Positions 8,732 through 30,112 of a DNA stretch of 64,000 nucleotides are shown piece by piece (position 1 is the first letter of the stretch; the number at the start of each line of letters is the position of its first letter). A program made the translations under genes and the position numbers. Under the pieces are notes generated by a model, which was given only the letters and a program-made list of their open reading frames with translations, was not told where the DNA came from and ran no database searches. The DNA is from Lepidodermella squamata (Eukaryota; Animalia; Gastrotricha): positions 558,001 through 622,000 of the forward strand of contig JBLDXI010000009.1 of assembly GCA_047495785.1 (NCBI GenBank), written 5' to 3'.

Positions 8732-10703
8732 TAAGCATCTATCTGGCCATCACTGACTATTATTCGTTACTTACTCGATAGCTAATGGAATAATCCTTGG
8801 AGTCGTTAATATTTTGGCAACATTTTCCACATCGCCCATGATCAATGCTAGCGGGTCATTCTCCTGGAGTACCCTATCGATATTTGAGTAATAAACAGTC
8901 ATAAATAGGTTTTCGTACGGCCGTTTTATTTTGTTCAACGAGCTGTCCGATTGCTGCAGAACTATTAACGTAATAATGATTAATAATAACTGCTTTAATA
9001 AGTTTATACATTTAAAAATCAATCAATAGAGTCGGTCTATAATATTCGCGATCGCAATGTAATACAATCTTTCAACATACAGCGAAAAAGTACAAAAGTT
9101 GGATTGACATAATTTGTTTGATGATTTACATAAAATCAAAGCGCGAAAACGGTTCACATTATCATAAAGAGATGACAAAGTCAGATCTGTTATAGCATTT
9201 TTTCGTGACCAGATTGTTTGATAACCACACTATGCCCGCGCTGACAGGCAAAACAGTGAGAGCATTCAAAAAATAATAATAGCAAATATCAACATATAGG
9301 TACTAGACGACAATGAAGCCAGTGACACCCAGCGACGATCCTCCACGTCAGATCCCGCAGATCGGCCAAGAAGCATAGTCAAACCACAGTTTTGACGCTG
9401 ATTTCGCAGTCAATGTAGCTTATTCAGCACATACACGCAGGCAATCGTGTGTTTTTTGGTGGGTTAGAAAGTTTTCATAGCGACAATGCACAGTCATTAT
9501 TTTTACATTTAAGGCCACGACAACGCAAGGTAACTGAGAGGCGAGACCCGTTGTTCATTAAGGCCGCGACGCGCTTTCGTTTAAAAATCAAACATTACGG
9601 TACGCAAGAGACTAAGTAGTAGTAACTAAGATGTACCGAGCGAAGCCCAAATTAAACATCGACTAAAATCGGCTGAATTATACTGATATTATCTGGCTAG
9701 TGAAGCTTATTCATTATCGTATACCAAAGCAAGTATTTTCAGAATTACTGACGCTGAGTTTGACAGCCCTCGGACATTCATTTTGACAACACATCACAGG
9801 AGTAAAAAATGTTATAGTAACCTCATGTAGAATAGCTGCTGTCGATACTTGATAAGATGGCGGCGTAAAAATAAGCACAACCCACGACACGATAGAACGA
9901 TGATTAGTGTAGTATGAAATAAAGAAAATTGTCAAGAACAGACACCAGGATGTCGTAAAAGCCGATTTCTCTTCTTCGCGAGATGCCAGACTATCGATGA
10001 GATTGATGTAATCAATATAAGGTGAAGAAATATAAAATAAAATGCACCAATCGTTGCATCAAGCGGCAACAAAATAAGTCGAGATCGACGTGGGACATGG
10101 CACAATGCTTTCTAGAAGAGATGACGAGAAATTTTTTGAAATATCTGACTAGCTAAACTCTGAAGGTAGTCGTGCAGCTGGTTATTATGTATATACTCGA
10201 GCAGAAATGATTCGAGAATGAAATTTAGCACGATTTACAATGGCAGCTCATCCACTTTCCTCGCCGGCTTTCGATCAGGCCAATTGTTTCAATTTGATGA
10301 TGTGCGAAAGATGAGCTTCAAGCTCGCTATGAGAAAGCTTGCAACTATAATGTGTATAACAACTAACGTCGAGTGTTCACACGAGAAAAAAAACTATGCA
10401 GTAAAATCAACTTGAACAAATTTTGCATAATTGCTTCGGCAATGAATAAGCATTTACAAATGATGGAACAAGAAAAATAATATTTACAAAAAAAATCACA
10501 AGACAATCAGACATCACATGCGTATAAGGAACATGAAGCTTCGCGATGGCACAAACTGTGATCTAAAACGTACAAAATTGCACGATCAGGTATTGCTCAA
10601 AAAGTAACTAATTATGTAATATAGGAATTTCGCTCTACGACATCACTCGATTACAGATTTACTCGATGCTGGCACAAGAAATGTATGTGAAGGTAGGATC
10701 GAT

Positions 10704-10726
10704 AGAGAGAGAGAGAGAGAGAGAGA
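10704..10726 (+). repeat. (AG)n microsatellite in the syntaxin 3' region
   Basis: About 11 uninterrupted AG units. Confidence 0.9.
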
Positions 10727-11062
10727 TGAAAGTGAGAAAAGAGATCGACTGAATTTTCGAGACCTGAAATAGTCATTTCCCGAAGTTGATTCGATGTAAA
10801 TATCATGTAAATGGTTCATAATATGATGCGAGTGAGTGGTATAGGCTCGAAGCACATAAGCGAACCAACTCGATAACAGGCGAACATTGAATGCAATGGC
10901 GCTTGAAAAATAAAACAGACTAGAAAATACGCAGTCTAACATCCACGAACAGAATAAAGAATTCTCGTAAGCAGCCGATTGCGCTCGGGCTGATAACATT
11001 GTCATCAAGACGAATAGCATGGCATTAGCTCTGGCAGTTGATGTGAAGGGAAGATGAGACGA

Positions 11063-11140
11063 CTACAAGAAAAATCCGCCGAGAACACCGCAGAGGACCA
11101 GGATGAGGACAGCAACACAGATCATGATCATAATCTTTTT
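11063..11140 (-). CDS. STX1: STX1 terminal exon 6c: canonical short TM anchor
   Basis: TTACAG|[25 protein letters not shown]. Confidence 0.9.
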   Translation of the reverse strand, partial: KKIMIMICVAVLILVLCGVLGGFFL

Positions 11141-14100
11141 CTGTAATTCAAAACACGAAAAGGGACATTTAGCATATATTCATCAGTAAACTATCATTTC
11201 TACCACAATTTGTTACGTTGAGAAAAAGATCTCTACCCATCACCCATGCTGGTGCACCCGAAAATGTTACCTGTGTCGATATTGTTAGTTTTGCATTGGA
11301 AGCATGTGATTTTTTTGCGTTAATTGATATAATTGCACTCGTTTACAACATTTAGAGCTTCACTGGAAGCTCATGACGATTTACACGATTAACTTCTTTT
11401 TTTTTATCTGCATTATTATTGTTACAACATCGAAAGACGATGGTTGTGTGTTCTAATGATGTCACGTGGACGTCACTGAGGCGTGCGCCCGGTTACCACC
11501 ACCGAGATTAGCTACAGGTTCAACTTGCCTCCGGCGACGAAGGTAGATAACACAAGATCACCCATTTTCAATGAGTAATGGCATCATCGGAAACCGAAAA
11601 ACCCGCCGATAACAGCAGCAAGAATGACAATGAGCACCGTTACGCAAATGATGATCATTATCTTTTTCTGTAATGAGTCAGCGCAAAAACAACACGTGTC
11701 ATTAAAATAGTGGCGAACGAAAATGGAAATGTGAAAAATGTAAAATCGTTTGGCTACACACATCCAGCTGTTCTAGTATTCAGCCACCTTCTGCTCGCCC
11801 AGTCACGTTTCATCGATGAGGATGAAGGCGCGACGAGTGAACGACTGGATGTTCGCAGCAATTTTTTGAAAAAAAAAATTATAAAACAAAAGACAACACG
11901 GAACAAAGACAAACTTCGATGACTTTCATTATCCTGAATACAGTCAACTTTATCATCACTGATTTTTCTCGTTTTTTTTGTAGATCAACAAAGAGCTTCG
12001 CGATTCCATCAACAAAACTTCGCTCGTTCACCTCAGATATACAAAACGTTACAGAGGCGCGCGTGACACAGATCCGCCGTTTCATTCAAAAAACAGGCTG
12101 CAGACTTCACCAAGAATACTGATTACTATTTTGTTTCCACTATCATCCAGTATATAATATAACTCTGTAAATAGCTTCTTCTGCCAGTTGAAAAAGTGTC
12201 TAGCTTTGACATGGGACAATTTGTTACAAACATTATCACAACACGCATCGTATAACCAAAGGTAACACATGGAAATGCTTGGCCTGGGAAATCGTTTAAG
12301 CAGCGAATAGTAATTAGCTCAAATTAACAGTATGTACAGCGATCACCGAGTGAAATATTAAATTGCGCTGCTTTAGAGCTCAGAACCGATTATATTTTCA
12401 TATTATGTGTAAAAGCGAAAGTTATAGGCAAGCGTGTTCCGCGAAATTTCAAGGTGCATGTGAAAATAAATATTGAGAAAGCATTCATTCTCCTGGTAAT
12501 ATAGCAGATATTACTAAAAGCTCAGCAGTTTTGAGCACCCATTCGGCACTAAATCTACGATAAATCGCCGTGAAAAGTAGAGATTCAGCAGCCAGCTTGG
12601 TATGTACAATAAAATTATATCTGGTAAGTCATGTCGCGCGGCTTTGAAATAGATGGGCACCTGCGTTTAGAGCAAGCGGCACAAATTTACAACATGAACG
12701 GACGACAAAAGCAGCACATTTGGGAAACATTTAAAAGCAATACAACAGTGTCACAACACTGGGAACATGTCATCTACAAGTCGTAGGCTATTGAGTGATT
12801 AGGAGCGCATGCCGTTCAAGGCGACTATTTGAGGGTGTACTTTCCTTTGATGTTTTAAACATTATAAAAATATATTGTTTAGCGCTGATTCTGTTTGCCT
12901 TTGTAGTAGAATATATTTTATAGCTTTGATTGACTGAGTAAAAAACGGGAGATCAGCGACCAGCGGCCACAGTCGTAGAATTGGCCGACGCCCTGACTAT
13001 TGTCGTTGCTGCAGCTGCAACGGTGGTTGTACTTGCTGATGGTGTAGTTGTGATTGGGACTGGAACTGTGACTACAATGGTGACTGTAGATGCTGTCTCC
13101 GAACTGCCTTTATTACACACGCCAGTTTTGCAAACTTCAACGGCTATTACGATTGCAGCGATTATTAGAGCGGCTAGAATGACACTGACTATGATCGACC
13201 AGCATATGCACTTTTTCTACAGGCCAAACAGCGGTTGTGGTAGCAGCAGCAGCAGCAGGTTTGAATTGACATCGAACAACAACGGTGCAAAGACAGAATA
13301 GGAAAAACAAAAACACAAACAACATAAAGCTAAATTATCATTAAAAACTAAAAAAGCGCTAATTCAATTTGAAAATCCCAAAGCCATCGATAATTTCCGA
13401 ATCAATAGAAAATTCCCCATGCATCAATAATCGATTTCCAGTAAACAAATTACTCCCAACCTTATCCACCCTGAAATTAGCGTTAAATAATAGTAAAAGC
13501 AAAAAAATATAACATGCGTAAAATTAGAAAGACAGACATTTATATGACAGACAATTGACAACATGAGCGCATGCAAAAAGCGAAAAGCTGCATCATCGCG
13601 CTGGCACCCATCATGCTCCATTAGTTTTCCCGTACTCGCGCAAATTACTTTTAGCTTATTATCTTATTCGCCGATATGTAAACGAAAATGACAGCGACCG
13701 CCGTGACCAAAACGCCGGCGATGATTATAAGCAAAATCCAGAATTTCTAAACACAGTCTTCTGATTAGCATTATTATCGCGGCAAGATCTTGTTTTGCCA
13801 TTCAACGGGTTTACACGACAAATATCAATATTTATCACAACAAGGAACCTTATGATGTAAAAATGTCGACGGACCTTTCTAGCTTTACTCTGATATTTGA
13901 TGGCTTTTTTAGTATCTTTAACGGCGGTTTCGATATAATCTTGGCTTTTCAAGACGTTGCTTTCGATCTGATCCACGAGTTCCCCCTTAACGCCATTTAA
14001 CCAAACCGCGACGAAACGAAAAAAAAGAAAAATATTAGTTATATGACGAACCTTTCTTGCAGCACTCTGATAACGAAGGGCCTTTTTGGTGTCTTGCACG

Positions 14101-15914
14101 GCCGTGTCAACGTACTCGGCCGATTTTTCGACGTTGAAGTCGATCCGGTCAATCATTTCACCCTAAAACGAGTGCAATTCGAGTGTGGAACGATCAATCA
14201 GCCGTAGATGGAGATGTGCATTGACGGCGACGTCATAGAGATGAAATAAAAACACACAACAGAATTACATGATGCCAAAAGTTTCGGAATTTTGCTTTCT
14301 TTCTACCCGATTCAGTTGAACATGAAAAGTTTGCGTCTATTCAGGCAACAAACAGGCCATGATACAGTGCCAAGGTCTGGTGTGAGATTTCCACGGTCTC
14401 TAAAGCTAATATGTTGCCCTCGTTCTATACAACTGTGAAACAGTTGAGCTAGTAATATGCACTCGATTCATGCAACAGAGCGCGTGTGCCCTAATTAGCA
14501 TCGCCCTACCACGAGCTATCACAACGTTGATAGAGCCCAGGCGAAAGCCCGAGCTCAGTCTAACTATCATCGTGTAACTGCGTGTTTCTTGGCTATCAAT
14601 TGACGACCGGATGCTACAACGCGTGCCCGCCCGGGGAGGACCCTGATTGGGAAGAGAGGGAGGAAAAATGACTGGAGACAAACCTGACTTTCGACTAGCA
14701 TCGCCATATCCATGAACATATCGTGTAGTTCTTGGATAGACTTTTCTAATTTTTTGATATCACCATGTCGAGCCTCAATATCGCGAAGCATTTGCCGGGC
14801 TTGTTGAGTATCCATCAAAATCTATCAGAAAAAGCAATGCCATTTAGAAGCTGCCTTGATATCAATCCAGTTAACTTACGCCTTGGGTGAAGGCCTGAGG
14901 GGTACCTGACTCGATCATGGTTTCAATTTCGTCATCGGTAGTCGATTTCCCAGCTGTAATAAAGAAAATTGTCAAGTTTAGCAAAATGAAGCGTAAAGGA
15001 TATTGGACATCAATTAGGTACAACAAAAAAGGCCCCATAAGGGTCAAGCGCTAACTGTATTCGAGTTGACGTTTAATATTGGCTTTGCAGCGTTCTCTGA
15101 ACTCGCACTGGGCAGTGTTGTAATCGGAAAGCACTTCGCAGAGTAGCCGGTGCATGGTCATATGCTGGGCGGACGATCGAATGGCAGGGCAAAACAAAGT
15201 CACAGACAACAGCAAGGTATGAAAGAAAAAACAAACGATAAATACGATAACAACAAAAATAGGCAAGCAACGTAGTGATAAAATAATATAAATCAACTAA
15301 TGACTAAGACGGTACAACACAAGCTCTGAGGCGTTTAAAACCTACATATTTCCATCTGGCGTTTAATGCGCTCTTTACACCGATCACGGTAGTCTACTTG
15401 AGCCTTATTGTAGTCATTCATCACTTCGATGAACTTGCGCGAGATCGATGAATACTACATTTGGTGATTTGGGGGTTTCATATGAACAGCTTAATAATCA
15501 ATGGCGCAATTCAAGTGTTGGATAATTTACCTGAGTTTTACGAATACGGAAATCTGCGGACATTTTCTGTCCCTCTTCCTCCTTTTCGATGTTTTGCTCC
15601 ATCAGCTTCAATTTTAGCCGAACTTTGTTCGCGTTTTGCTTGATTTCTAGCATAATTTGGTCGAGCTCCTCCTTAACGCGGTCGTCGGTCTGAGGCGCGG
15701 AAAGGATGTCTGAGTGTTTCCGCTTCACCTCCTCGACTTGCTGTGCGATAGTGTCGATCATGCCGCGGATTTGCTTCACTTGCTCGAAGAAGTCTTCCAT
15801 GAAATTTGCGCCACCGCCCGCACCACCATCGTCCATTTGCACGTGGACATCGTCAGCGCCGAGCGCATCCTCTGCCTTGGCGGCAGCTTGTAGCTGTTGC
15901 AGCCTATCACGCAT
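11063..15914 (-). CDS. STX1: Syntaxin-1 with mutually exclusive internal exons and three alternative terminal TM exons
   Basis: Exons 15914-15531, [15454-15346 or 15164-15056], 14953-14880, 14821-14684, [14162-14052 or 13985-13875], [13216-12953 or 11667-11584 or 11140-11063]. All are GT-AG and phase-compatible. N-peptide MRDRL, Habc [14 protein letters not shown] motif [32 protein letters not shown]|GEMIDRI. Confidence 0.95.
11584..11667 (-). CDS. STX1: STX1 terminal exon 6b: canonical short TM anchor
   Basis: TTACAG|[27 protein letters not shown]. Confidence 0.9.
   Translation of the reverse strand, partial: KKIMIIICVTVLIVILAAVIGGFFGFR
12953..13216 (-). CDS. STX1: STX1 terminal exon 6a: TM plus ~60-aa Thr-rich extracellular tail
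   Basis: TAG|[87 protein letters not shown]. Phase 0, begins AAAAAG like 6b/6c. Not in the ORF track. Confidence 0.8.
   Translation of the reverse strand, partial: KKCICWSIIVSVILAALIIAAIVIAVEVCKTGVCNKGSSETASTVTIVVTVPVPITTTPSASTTTVAAAATTIVRASANSTTVAAGR
13875..13985 (-). CDS. STX1: STX1 alternative exon 5b (SNARE C-half), 111 nt
   Basis: AAG|[37 protein letters not shown]|GTCCGT. Confidence 0.88.
14052..14162 (-). CDS. STX1: STX1 alternative exon 5a (SNARE C-half), 111 nt
   Basis: TAG|[37 protein letters not shown]|GTTCGT. Confidence 0.9.
15056..15164 (-). CDS. STX1: STX1 alternative exon 2b (Hc helix), 109 nt
   Basis: CAG|[36 protein letters not shown]|GTTAGC; same length and phases as 2a. 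Confidence 0.88.
15346..15454 (-). CDS. STX1: STX1 alternative exon 2a (Hc helix), 109 nt
   Basis: TAG|[36 protein letters not shown]|GTAGGT. Confidence 0.9.
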
Positions 15915-16208
15915 TTTCAGCTAAAGCTAGAGATTCTATTGGGTGAGTAGGGGCTGCGGTGACGTAAAGATCGGTCCAGCCGAATTGGACGGGACTCGGA
16001 AATGCAGAAACGGGAGGTTGCTGTGAAAACAACTCGACGAGTTTAGGGTCGACAGCTTCGACGAAAACTCATAAAAGCAATCATAAAATACTAAAAAAAT
16101 ACAAATATGGAATGATAAATACGTCTTAATATCTTGAAAATGCGAGCTCCGAAAAAGGCGCAAGCTCGCATTGATGCATAGCAAATAGATGAAACTGCGA
16201 ATTGCAAG

Positions 16209-17570
16209 CTAGAAGGATGCAAAAGTTTGATTCATTGAGCTCTCATTGATCGCGCTGCTTTCAGAGCTGTTCGAAGTTAGGGGATTTAAAATATATTTCC
16301 ACGCAAGCCAAACCGCGATAGCGGTTAGCATGAGCATTAAAGTGACTAAAATGGCCCAACAAATTAATTTCTTCTGTTAGATTTAAAGAAAGAATTAAAA
16401 GAATTAAGCTTCAGAGAATATAAGCACAACCAAACCTTAATTAGCGAATTATGATAACGAGTTGCTTTTCGCAGAGCCTGTAGACCGCTATCCACGAAAT
16501 CAGCTGTCTTGTTCACTTGAGCCTCTATTCGGTCAACCACGTCACCCTTAATACATACATCAACGCAAGTCTATACGTTAGACTTTAGTGTTATCTACCT
16601 GATTTTCTATGAGAATCCTCATGTTTTGGAAAAGATCATGAAGTTCCAAGATAGACTGTTGCAATTTCTCTAGATCTTTGTGTCGCTCTTGGACATCTCG
16701 CAGCATTTGCATGCTTCTTTCTGGGTCGAGTAGCAACTTAACGCAATAAGGGCTGAACAAGAGTGAGACTTACAATTACAACTTACTCCCTTGATAAAAG
16801 GACTAAATCGGCTGGGATTGTCGACCAATTCTTCGATATCGGATTCTGACAAACGTTGACCAGCTGTTGAATCGGTCATAAACAATGTAATGCCAAAACA
16901 ATACAAGGATTTCATCGATGACCAACTTATTTCAAGCTGCCTGACAAATTTTTCCTTAGACTTGATACGATGCGCATCTTGAATTTCGTGATAAGCAACC
17001 ATCACATTGGAAAACGTCCGAGAAAGAGTGATATACTAGAGAAGGAGGAAATCGCTCTATGAACACGCGAGTAAAATTTCGAGATATAGGCAAACCTGTG
17101 CTTCTTTAATCCGGAAATTTGCACACGTCCTGTCCGGTGATTGCTCCATTTCATAGTTCATTTCTAGGAAAGAGCTAGCAAAATAGCCCAACAAAGAAGG
17201 GGAGTTTTACTTTTGAGAGCTCCCAAGACTCTGTTTGACGAATGTCTCATTTCATTCATATGGCTATCGACCTCAGCCGACAAATCTGAGCCAAACATCA
17301 TCGTTAGTGGGCGTTTGATTAGTTAAGGTTCTTACTATTGCTACTATTTGTGTCCACCAGCATGGCAGTTTGCAATTTCTTGATCAAATCGACAAGCTCG
17401 GTCATTCGATCAATTACACGAATCAAGAGCCTGACGTCTTCAAAAAACTCCTCCATGAAGAGCTCCCCCACGTCGACAGTGTAGTTGAATTTTTCCAGGT
17501 CGTCATCACTACGACCTGAATCGTCGCCACGTCTAGCGGCCTCGCGCAACTCATCTGTGCGGTCCCGCAT
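16209..17570 (-). CDS. Syntaxin-1-like paralog b (8 exons), TM plus tail with N-glycosylation sequons
   Basis: Exons 17570-17336, 17285-17211, 17163-17096, 17035-16927 (109 nt), 16863-16787, 16736-16599 (138 nt), 16546-16436 (111 nt), 16373-16209. Motifs MRDRTDEL, FMEEFFEDV, ERHKDLEKLQQSILELHDLF...ENQ|GDVVDRIE. Confidence 0.9.
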
Positions 17571-17729: not shown

Positions 17730-19082
17730 TCAGCTAGGCGTAGTGAGCGTCGGCGGCATTGCCGTATTGAAAATCGAGTATGGAACTGGTGCGACGGCAG
17801 TGACGTCTCCGGTTTTCCGAAAAATCGGCGTAAGATAATGTAGGGCGGTCAAAACAACGGCACACACCGCCAAGAGAATAAATACAATGAGTATAGCCAG
17901 GCAGCAACAACGCTTCTGTAACAACAACACGGCGGTTAAAAAATCGACTCTCTCTATAAAATTAATCGCCAATCGTCACTTGCTTTGGTGATTCGTCTTT
18001 TGTGGACTTCAGCTTTTGCAGTTTCTTTCGTCGCAGATTCAACCAAATGATCAGCTCTATCGATAAGTGCTTCGATCTACAACAGCAACACTGTTGGCGT
18101 TTAAATGATGCCGATGAAACGTACGTTATCGATTTTTTCTCCAGTGGCCTCAATCAACAACTGGTACTCGATAAATATATCCTTCAAAAGTCGAATATCG
18201 TTCTCTAGCTTAACAAGATCCTCGTGTCGCCTTTGCACAATTTTGAGGATAGACTGCTGATCAGTTTCGAAAAAACCGCCGCTAGATGTTGCAACCTCCA
18301 GAAAATAACGAGGGGCCATGACAGGATCGATTACAACATTGCGACCAGCTATTAGCAAGGCTTAAGAATTCGCCGTAAATCATACATTAGACTCATACTT
18401 TTCAAGAGAACATCGCGATGGGTCCTTTCGGCCGACTTCTTCAAAAACTCGTCCCTCGTGGTATTAAAGTACTCCATGGTATCAGCCGCTGTCCTTTTCA
18501 AGGTGTCAATATGCCACTGGAACATGCCAGCCTCCCGAATACTACCAGTAGAGTCCGCTGTTTGCGCAGATCTCGATGCTAGATTAATAGCCATTAGGAA
18601 GAGATGGTCATAATAATGAGAAGTAAGAAACCCTCTAAGTCCTTGATCTTCGACCACGCTTGAGAAAATAGCTGCGAAATTTCATCGTGGCACCGAGTGA
18701 TCTCATCAAGTGCGACTGTTGGTAACATTTGGGGAAACAATAGCGGGCTAATATAATTAAAGAAACCTTTGGTTGGCGGTGTCTTCATTAGGTAATCATC
18801 CTGGGGGGTTTTCACTCGATCCACCAACGACCGAATGAATTCGAAATCCTGACGAATCGAGCTAACTTGAGACAAAAAAGCGCGGAAAGCATTAGATGAG
18901 CCCAGAAGAGGAGTGCCAGGAGTTGGAAAGACTGTTTCATCATGCGATGAGCTGCTAATTTCCGAAAGGCTCTTCTAAAATGAATTAATTTAAATGAGCA
19001 AGACGTGATTAGATGAACCAACAGCCTGTATGTTTGACTGCCGAGCGGCCTGCAGCTCGATTAGGCGATCTTTAACCACCAT
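17730..19082 (-). CDS. Divergent syntaxin-like paralog c (multi-exon, GC-AG last intron)
   Basis: MVVKDRLIELQ N-peptide; RRHEDLVKLENDIRLLKDIFIEYQLLIEATGEKIDN|IEALIDRA SNARE-like motif; terminal exon KRCCCLAILIVFILLAVCAVVLTAL (17915-17730). Confidence 0.8.
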
Positions 19083-28080: not shown

Positions 28081-30112
28081 TCAATCAGCAGGCTCGTCAG
28101 CTAGAGCCAAGCACTCTTGAAGAGGATTGTGCAGCTGCCTGGCTACGTTTTGAGCGGCATGTAGTGCGCTGTACAACTTTTCAAGCTTCTTTCGAGAGGA
28201 ATTACATTCAGTTCGCAAACGCTCCACTTCGCGCTCAAGTTCCCGAGTGCGCTCAGTGGATTTTTTCTCGGAGTCACATGCGTTTTCAGCCTTCAATCGT
28301 AAGGCTTCGAATTCAGCCGAGTAGTTTTTGCTCTCTTTCGTAGCTTTTTCAGCACGCTGCTTCGCGTGTTCAGCTTCTTCCCGGGCGATGTCCAAGTCGT
28401 GTTGTGACGTCGACAGCAATTGAGACAGCTCGCGGACACTTCGCTGAAGTCGCGTGATTTCATCAGTAGCATCCCGCAGCGCAGACGAATGCTGCCGTTC
28501 GGCATTCGCGCGATCGTTGTCAGAACTAGAAATAGCATCTCGCCAACGCTTCTCCAACATATCTAATCGTTCTTGATATGCAACTCGCTCACGAACAAGT
28601 GCCATTTCAGTACCACTCTTCGCGTTGGCCAACTCGACCTCGGCGGCAGCTTTCTCCGCCGCCAACCTCGCAACTCGGTCCTCTAATTCGGTTCGCTGTT
28701 TTCTCGCGTCTTCCAAAGCAAACTTCAAGCGGTCAACCTCCCTTTCCGAGTCATAAGATTTCTGTTCCATCTGCGTCTTCTCAGCCTGCCAGCGCCGTTC
28801 GAGGTCGCTTGAGACTGAGGCTAATTTTGCCTCGGCTTTTGCAGCTCTACTGCTTGATTCCCGGGCAGATTGAACTGCACTACCCAACTGGGATTGCAAA
28901 TCAGCTGCACGGTGTCGCTCAAGAGCTACTTCGCTCTCCAATGTAGAAACTCGACTAGTCATCATTACAACTTGGCCTCGCGCGTCAGTCAATTCGCTAG
29001 CAACCAAGGTTAACTGTTCACCCCATTTTTCCTCGAGGAGCCGTATTTCTGCGTCCTTCTTCTTCAGAGCTTCCCCAAGAAGTCTCACTTTTTCGTCGGC
29101 TATCGAAGAAGCGGAATCAACATGCTGTTTAATGGCTTTCAGCGCCCTCGCCTCCCTATCAATTGCTCGCTGGCGTTCCGAAGTCAGCGAAATCCAACCC
29201 TGTAACAATTCACGAGTCAACAAACATTTAGTTAAAAGAAATGATAGACGCTCTACCTGAATTATATCAACCACTTCGCTGGGAAGGTTACATCCATCGA
29301 GGCGGTAGACAGTCAAGTTTGAAGAGTGTCCACTTAATCTGGGAATCGTTTTCATAAGGGCTTGGCCGCCTTTCACGCCTATCGCGGCGTTCCATCGAAT
29401 GTCAAGATTGCGAAGTGAACAGTTCTCCGCTAAAGCTTCGCCCAATCGAGCTGCTCCTTCCGCGTCCATGCAATTACTACGAAGGTCCAGCAACTGCAGA
29501 CTTCGATTGATTAAAAGACCAGCGCATAACCGGGCGAAAAGCGTTCCATTAACACCGAGTTCGTTCCAACACAACGTCAACCTTGAAAAAACTGTTAGAA
29601 ACTAGCGTATCATAGACAAAGAAATCACCTACTCCGTCAGCGTTGCGTTTTCGTGTAAGAAAGAGCCGATCGAATCACAACAATTCGAAGTCAAGACATT
29701 GCCTTTCAAGTTCAGTTTCTTAAGCGAAGGGTGAAATTTGATACTGTTGAATATTGTACTGGCACCTGATGAACATTGGAAAATAAGACTACAAATTTTC
29801 TAAAATTAAACAAATTACTGCAGTCGCCTAATGAACAGTCAGATAGATTTAGTTCAGTGATGTTTCCTGATAGTGAAAAGTCGAACAAAAACGCTCTCAA
29901 AGTCAGCGAGTCGTCTTGGCTGATGTTGAAGCCAGATAAGTCGAGTACATTTTCAGCGGAGTACTTGCAGCTGAAAAGACAGGCTAATATAAATTACATT
30001 TCCGCTCATTAACGAGTAGCACTTACCCATCCAACTTAGACTGAAGGTAAGAAGAGCCGAGGGAAAAAGACACGCTTTCCAGTGTGCGTTTACTTATAGG
30101 ATCAGCAGCCAT
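28081..30112 (-). CDS. LRRC45: Leucine-rich repeat and coiled-coil protein LRRC45-like (multi-exon)
   Basis: RI-like LRRs (LNLSDC, LNLKGN, LTLCWNELG, LDLRSN, LDIRWN) followed by a ~280-aa coiled coil. In-frame intron near 29257-29200. Confidence 0.8.

Follow-up and report, generated by a model that had tools for sequence, protein, structure and literature searches.

The 64,000-nucleotide (nt) stretch of the Lepidodermella squamata genome analyzed here (the window, contig JBLDXI010000009.1) carries a syntaxin-1 type gene on its minus strand, in which three parts of the encoded protein can be drawn from alternative exons (Table 1, window numbering). The gene is compact, with short introns and a length of less than 5 kb. 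AG acceptors and GT donors are present on every exon, and each tested exon combination is in frame from the ATG at 15914. The initial annotation described a 2 x 2 x 3 cassette, with two exons for the Hc helix, two for the C-terminal half of the SNARE motif, and three for the terminal membrane anchor. When the minus strand is read and spliced, all of these exons are recovered where they had been placed, with open frames and AG/GT borders. The three terminal exons (A, B and C) begin with AAAAAG in phase 0, as described, and each encodes K or KK, a hydrophobic span, and a stop. A fourth terminal exon, anchor X, had been overlooked, which makes the layout 2 x 2 x 4.

Two kinds of additional data are used below. 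Three public sequencing runs cover the locus, of which X1 is RNA, X3 is spliced, and X2 is DNA-like, and their contigs were placed on positions 10450-16400. The RNA data are assembled contigs of small runs, in which rare variants are dropped. For conservation, we use L001, a 12.8-kb metagenome contig of a related species, which carries a protein fragment (P0002) 93% identical over exon 1. No full-length close relatives were found in protein databases, where an exon-1 search of 90% clusters gave this fragment only.

Table 1 Exons and elements of the syntaxin-1 type gene, with nonsynonymous differences (pN) from the counterpart in L001. TM, transmembrane span; UTR, untranslated region.
Feature	Position	Strand	Length and content	pN against L001
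Exon 1 (e1)	15914-15531	-	384 nt, 128 codons, ATG at 15914; N-peptide, Ha, Hb, Hc start	
Exon 2a	15454-15346	-	109 nt; Hc helix variant, conserved spiralian 'Y...KRQMEI' type	0.011
Exon 2b	15164-15056	-	109 nt; alternative Hc helix variant, 'H...RERCK..KRQLE' type	0.185 (synonymous sites saturated)
Exon 3 (e3)	14953-14880	-	74 nt, constitutive; Habc-SNARE linker	0.076
Exon 4 (e4)	14821-14684	-	138 nt, constitutive; N-terminal half of SNARE motif, ends at zero-layer Gln (..VESQ)	0 (protein identical)
Exon 5a	14162-14052	-	111 nt; C-terminal half of SNARE motif and polybasic juxtamembrane stretch	0 (protein 100% identical)
Exon 5b	13985-13875	-	111 nt; alternative SNARE C-half, weak AAG acceptor	0.095 (synonymous sites saturated)
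Anchor X, terminal exon	13746-13651	-	96 nt; acceptor tttag, 31 codons, K, TM, and stop	
U/G-rich intronic element	13321-13303	-	19 nt; exact match to L001 11215-11233, candidate splicing-regulator site	
Anchor A, terminal exon	13216-12953	-	264 nt; TM and Ser/Thr/Ala-rich tail of ~60 residues beyond the membrane	
Anchor B, terminal exon	11667-11584	-	84 nt; classic neuronal-type anchor (..IGGFFGF)	0.166 (dN/dS 0.12)
Anchor C, terminal exon	11140-11063	-	78 nt; 3' UTR continues below 10450	0.129 (dN/dS 0.07)

Exon 1 matches the Pfam family Syntaxin (PF00804, the N-terminal Habc domain) with an E-value of 3.9e-16 and a score of 59.7 bits, against a cutoff of 26.7. In an exhaustive HMMER search, the best full-length matches are syntaxin-1A/1B type proteins with 56-60% identity over exon 1, and the exon blocks are shared with named syntaxin-1A and 'syntaxin' proteins. 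Spliced translations in all combinations read ..MLVESQ, then GE..ARK, then KK across the exon borders, followed by a hydrophobic span and a stop. The last residue of exon 4 is the zero-layer Gln, aligned with Q226 of a syntaxin-1A-like reference protein (P0010). Since exon 4 stops exactly at this residue, exon 5 comprises the entire C-terminal half of the SNARE motif and the polybasic stretch. On the same reference, exon 2 aligns with residues 120-155, which cover most of Hc (its C-terminal two-thirds) and the start of the linker. The 'LE' hinge of open syntaxin was considered as part of exon 2 and rejected, as L165/E166 align to exon 3. The domain match and the best database matches agree with the original assignment, and on sequence grounds we classify the gene as a plasma-membrane (syntaxin-1 type) Qa-SNARE.

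The two Hc exons, 2a and 2b, are located 181 nt apart, and their products share 17 of 36 residues. As 109 is not a multiple of three, the inclusion of both exons or of neither shifts the reading frame and leads to an early stop, so that productive mRNAs carry exactly one of them. Both exons are abundant in RNA, as alternatives to each other and at comparable levels. Exon 2a is joined to exon 1 (15531-15454) and to exon 3 (15346-14953) at a depth of ~130. The expected use of 2b is borne out by its junctions with exon 1 (15531-15164) and exon 3 (15056-14953) in assembled RNA contigs, at a depth of ~85-90 in X1, and the former is also found in X3. No 2a-2b junction is present among the RNA contig junctions on 10450-16400. 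The junction of exons 3 and 4 is found in RNA as well, and used exons of the gene have RNA depths of 100-200.

In a tree of the Hc block, 2a is placed inside a multi-phylum clade of Y-type exons ('Y...QMEI') with support of 93/94, carries all three diagnostic columns, and has a mean identity of 29.3 of 36 residues. The branch of exon 2b is long; this exon carries two of the three diagnostic columns, and its nearest neighbors are canonical H-type exons ('H...QLE'). It looks like a fast-evolving canonical H-type exon. Compared with L001, nonsynonymous change is ~15 times faster in 2b than in the Y-type 2a, which is nearly frozen. The order of the two exons, Y-type and then H-type, is the same as in the annelid Dimorphilus gyrociliatus and in a flatworm-like locus (L005), both described below. 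One candidate docking/selector pairing at exon 2, a 10-nt CATATG-based pair in the window, was rejected as it is not kept in L001.

The second pair, 5a and 5b, shows a similar arrangement after the zero-layer Gln. The two exons are separated by 66 nt, are in the same phase with AG/GT borders, and encode 23 identical residues of 37. With a length of 111 nt, the reading frame gives no check against the inclusion of both. The intron between them is only 39 nt in L001, where the shortest other introns of the gene are 63-65 nt, which suggests that steric exclusion may separate the two exons, at least in the relative. In RNA, 5a is the sole exon-5 variant, with junctions to exon 4, anchor A, and anchor C and a depth of ~140-210. 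RNA contigs of depth 4-7, with joints between opposite strands, are found at 13278-13510, 13830-13991, and 14160-14328, in introns and over 5b. These contigs probably arose as fold-backs in assembly, with unspliced or contaminating DNA reads as their source rather than 5b transcripts.

We scanned both strands for terminal anchors, defined by an AG followed by a K/R and a hydrophobic span, with the stop falling within 100 codons. In the 64-kb window, the scan gave seven distinct sites, six of which are terminal exons of the syntaxin cluster, and in L001 all six sites are syntaxin terminal exons. Given this specificity and the same-order recurrence of the cassette exons in a diverged relative, the arrangement is more than chance. 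The donor of 5a at 14052 is spliced in RNA to both 13216 (A) and 11140 (C). The depth of the 5a-A junction is ~92 in X1, and the junction is also present in X3; the depth of the 5a-C junction is ~102. The A form is abundant in RNA, its coverage extends over 11843-13235, and its 3' end lies near ~11972, before B and C. The tail added by A is mucin-like. Anchor B has an open frame and a good acceptor, and 16-17 of its 25-27 aligned residues are identical to the neuronal-type anchors of rat STX1A, insects, and the clam Mya.

A U/G-rich 19-mer, TGTTTGTGTTTTTGTTTTT, precedes the acceptor of anchor A by 86 nt and is shared with L001, the rest of the intron being unalignable. In 2000 shuffles, the longest match was 16, and none was as long as 19. 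By analogy with Caenorhabditis elegans unc-64 (see below), the 19-mer may be a binding site of a splicing regulator. A 14-mer, ATTTTTTTTTTCAA, is also common to the two species (11862-11879 in the window and 11955-11968 in L001), between A and B and close to where the A form is inferred to end. This match may be due to chance in T-rich sequence, as matches of 14 also arose in 0.3% of shuffles made with another intron pair.

L001 contains all 11 exons of the gene, cassette and constitutive alike; their order is unchanged, and each has an open frame and AG/GT borders. Their nucleotide identity is ~70-77%, and the introns are unalignable. Synonymous sites are saturated (proportion of synonymous differences, pS, 0.59-0.88; 0.65-0.76 for 5b and B), with pN between 0 and 0.19. 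Given these saturated sites and unalignable introns, the low pN indicates that the exons unseen in RNA are kept by purifying selection and are not relics; the selection on duplicated exons that had been proposed for examination in relatives is thus found for all cassette exons, which are intact in L001. Several non-consensus donors are the same in the two species (GTAGGT for 2a, GTTAGC for 2b, GTTTGT for exon 4, and GTCCGT for 5b), and so is the weak AAG acceptor of 5b. The counterpart of anchor X is located at the syntenic place (L001 10881-10982) and keeps the K, the transmembrane span, and the stop, with a drifted sequence, and anchor A is kept with a Thr-rich tail at L001 11273-11545. The counterpart of exon 1 in L001 contains an extra 65-nt intron (L001 9182-9246), which was thus either gained in one lineage or lost in the other.

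Comparisons with other animals show that this layout is not confined to the present genome. We gathered named invertebrate isoforms by a search seeded with Schistosoma syntaxin-1A. In the nemertean Lineus longissimus, six RefSeq isoforms (X2 and X4-X8) differ only in the blocks of exon 2, exon 5, and the terminal exon, with two Hc variants (H...QRQLEI and Y...KRQMEI), two variants of the SNARE C-half, and four anchors, as here. Each exon-5 variant of Lineus is combined with at least two anchors, and one of the anchors is found with both exon-5 variants, in gene models that may be partly inferred. Lineus differs in having no anchor with a long extracellular tail, and its H-type variant is canonical whereas 2b is strongly diverged. 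Scallop syntaxin isoforms X1 and X2 differ only at residues 122-155, the same Hc block, while bee isoforms differ in the anchor only. In Dimorphilus gyrociliatus (L007), there are a 'Y...QMEI' and, after it, an 'H...QLEI' Hc exon, each 109 nt long and bordered by AG/GT, and three terminal anchor exons, but only one exon 5 was found and exons 3 and 4 are fused. The flatworm-like locus likewise contains a pair of 109-nt Hc exons, ordered as in Dimorphilus and bordered by AG/GT, and the first of the pair groups with flatworm exons. In an arthropod-like locus (L003), exon 5 is present twice with the boundary seen here, and its second copy is fused to an anchor; the locus has one more anchor exon and no duplicate of the Hc exon. 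A coherent 'b-type' isoform (2b, 5b, and X together) was looked for in two further proteins (P0070 and P0150) and rejected, as no block-wise pattern was found.

Related arrangements are known in vertebrates and nematodes. Vertebrate STX3A and STX3B resemble the present gene in having tandem alternative exons after the zero-layer Gln followed by alternative anchors, and one vertebrate STX3 model (P0149) reads through both exon-5 copies with a boundary at the same residue as here. In STX3A and STX3B, the SNARE C-half and the anchor are reported to switch together, and to our knowledge STX3 has no alternative at the Hc level. In C. elegans, alternative last exons of unc-64 give the neuronal and non-neuronal isoforms UNC-64A and UNC-64B different hydrophobic anchors, and the choice between anchor exons 8a and 8b is made through binding of the CELF protein UNC-75 in the last intron (PMC4946901). 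The present gene is similar in its alternative last exons with different anchors and in the U/G-rich 19-mer upstream of anchor A; it differs in the Hc and SNARE-half alternatives, which are not part of unc-64 as described in PMC4946901, and in its four anchors, one with a mucin-like tail. In SNAP-25, a partner SNARE in this complex, exons 5a and 5b form an ancient tandem-duplicated pair used mutually exclusively (PMC2581893), but this is another protein with one level of variation.

The initial annotation knew of no description of a three-level arrangement, yet the same three blocks, with 2, 2, and 4 variants, occur in the Lineus isoforms, and the Hc pair is also present in an annelid, in scallop, and in a flatworm-like locus, as genome sequence or as annotation. 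As the layout is visible in the public annotation of other invertebrates, it is not a new arrangement. We found no paper describing an Hc alternative or a three-level layout in syntaxin-1, and STX genes go unmentioned in the main text of a survey of human tandem exons (PMC9741552). The field may have overlooked this feature of syntaxin-1.

We conclude that the cassette is an inherited and conserved architecture, partly expressed, and not an invention of this genome, and that this syntaxin-1 type Qa-SNARE gene very probably retains an ancient three-level layout. Several observations weigh against the full form of this conclusion. The initial annotation allowed for the use of both exon-5 copies and of terminal exons A, B, and C; in assembled RNA contigs, this holds for 5a and for A and C, which are spliced to 5a, and no junction is found for 5b or B. 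The RNA depth over 5b is ~5, anchor X has no RNA junction and a depth of ~5-10, and both values equal the level of the surrounding introns. Anchor B has a depth of 0 in X1, and a search centered on B found the DNA-like run and no RNA run. The RNA contigs are too short to link choices across the three levels. No conserved docking/selector RNA pair was found for the exon-2 cluster, and a tree of exon 5 (37 columns) did not resolve the orthology of 5a and 5b to the Lineus, arthropod, or STX3 pairs. The placement of 2b among H-type exons depends on a long branch and two of three diagnostic columns, and the Lineus evidence is automatic annotation at the protein level. We note that, in assembled contigs of small runs, the lack of 5b, X, and B junctions is weak evidence.

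If that lack is taken at face value, 5b, X, and B would be unused relics and the working gene would be 2 x 1 x 2. This would account for the missing junctions, for the depths of 0 over B and ~5-10 over 5b and X compared with 100-200 on used exons, for the lack of an RNA run covering B, and for the weak AAG acceptor of 5b. However, all three exons are intact with their splice sites in L001 despite saturated synonymous sites and unalignable introns, with a pN of 0.095 (5b) and 0.166 (B) against a pS of 0.65-0.76. The weak acceptor of 5b is itself conserved, together with its donor hexamer, and X keeps its K, transmembrane span, and stop at the syntenic place, so we consider relics very unlikely. 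A recent, lineage-specific invention of the cassette appears even less plausible. The very divergent 2b and the single fragment above 90% identity in protein databases would fit such an origin, but a same-order 109-nt Hc pair is present in Dimorphilus and in the flatworm-like locus, the same three variable blocks are found in Lineus, and 2a is nested in a multi-phylum clade. Nor do we give any appreciable weight to an assembly artefact from collapsed or expanded haplotypes. Contigs of the independent DNA-like run cover 12845-16379 and 10738-12857 at ~99% identity and even depth, which excludes it, and furthermore L001 has the same exon order and RNA uses both 2a and 2b.

The rival that we take most seriously, without favoring it, is that the levels are not free but coupled, for example through 5b and the adjacent anchor X as an STX3B-like module or through pairs of Hc and anchor exons, giving a handful of fixed isoforms rather than 12-16. 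5b and X are neighbors, 128 nt apart here and 87 nt apart in L001, and both are unseen in bulk RNA while 5a-A and 5a-C are seen. The fusion of the second exon-5 copy to an anchor in the arthropod-like locus points in the same direction, as does the joint swap of both parts in vertebrate STX3A and STX3B. On the other side, Lineus isoforms pair exon-5 variants with several anchors, and one anchor with both variants, with the reservation already made that these models may be partly inferred.

Under the preferred reading of an inherited three-level cassette, the three levels are as follows. At the first level, the two 109-nt Hc exons are spliced mutually exclusively. At the second level, 5a is the default, and 5b is probably included only where an activator is present, its weak acceptor needing activation. 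At the third level, four alternative last exons each provide their own anchor, stop, and 3' end, with A adding the mucin-like tail. 5b, X, and B may be used in rare cell types or stages, and the choice of anchor may be regulated through U/G-rich intronic elements, by analogy with unc-64. The Hc variants would tune the closed conformation and its handling by Munc18, and the 5a/5b variants would tune late zippering.

Syntaxin-1 biology has been built on mouse, fly, and nematode models, which lack an alternative Hc exon. The 109-nt Hc pair is kept in this lineage and in annelid and flatworm-like genomes, and scallop and nemertean isoforms show corresponding variants. This points to a functional split in the region with which syntaxin closes onto its SNARE motif and which Munc18 handles. 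A bolder interpretation, which we raise tentatively and consider rather doubtful, is that the Y/H pair is an undescribed switch of the Munc18-regulatory domain, hundreds of millions of years old and overlooked because fly, worm, and mouse lack it, with the Y-type constrained and the H-type fast-evolving here, and that together with the other modules it would form a spiralian combinatorial code of exocytic syntaxins, specific to cell types, from one gene. The compact gene should be convenient for testing the role and the choice of each module. The discovery itself is modest, as its pieces are already in the automatic annotation of other species.

The gene does not stand alone. Two divergent tandem paralogs of the syntaxin-1 family are located directly upstream on the minus strand (16209-17570 and 17730-19082), with the same intron positions and 20-30% identity to the main gene. 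Each has a single terminal exon encoding a transmembrane span and a tail of 30-40 residues. The initial annotation had suggested that one gene could supply a family of plasma-membrane Qa-SNAREs; given the two adjoining paralogs, the organism has other sources of plasma-membrane-type syntaxins besides this gene. The paralogs, the near-frozen Y-type Hc exon, and the abundant anchor with a mucin-like tail are features of this lineage. A Saccoglossus-like (hemichordate-like) locus (L006, 10001-15299 and 20695-25299) also contains tandem syntaxin-1 genes, but these are near-identical whole genes with no exon duplicates. Farther from the cluster, a 499-codon open frame (28081-29580, minus strand) has a single homologue, which is 46% identical, metagenomic, and without a precomputed Pfam family; clathrin was considered as its identity and rejected.

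At the 5' end of the main gene, an RNA contig stops at an AG acceptor near 16091 (minus strand) and continues with 20 letters, GCGAATTTGATTTGTGTCTA, that are found nowhere in the window. The mRNA contig of the upstream paralog ends at ~16115, ~24 nt from the 5' contig end of the main gene (16090-16115). The 20 letters look like a spliced leader, in which case the tandem cluster would be operon-like and the main gene its downstream member; the alternative is a distant 5' exon.

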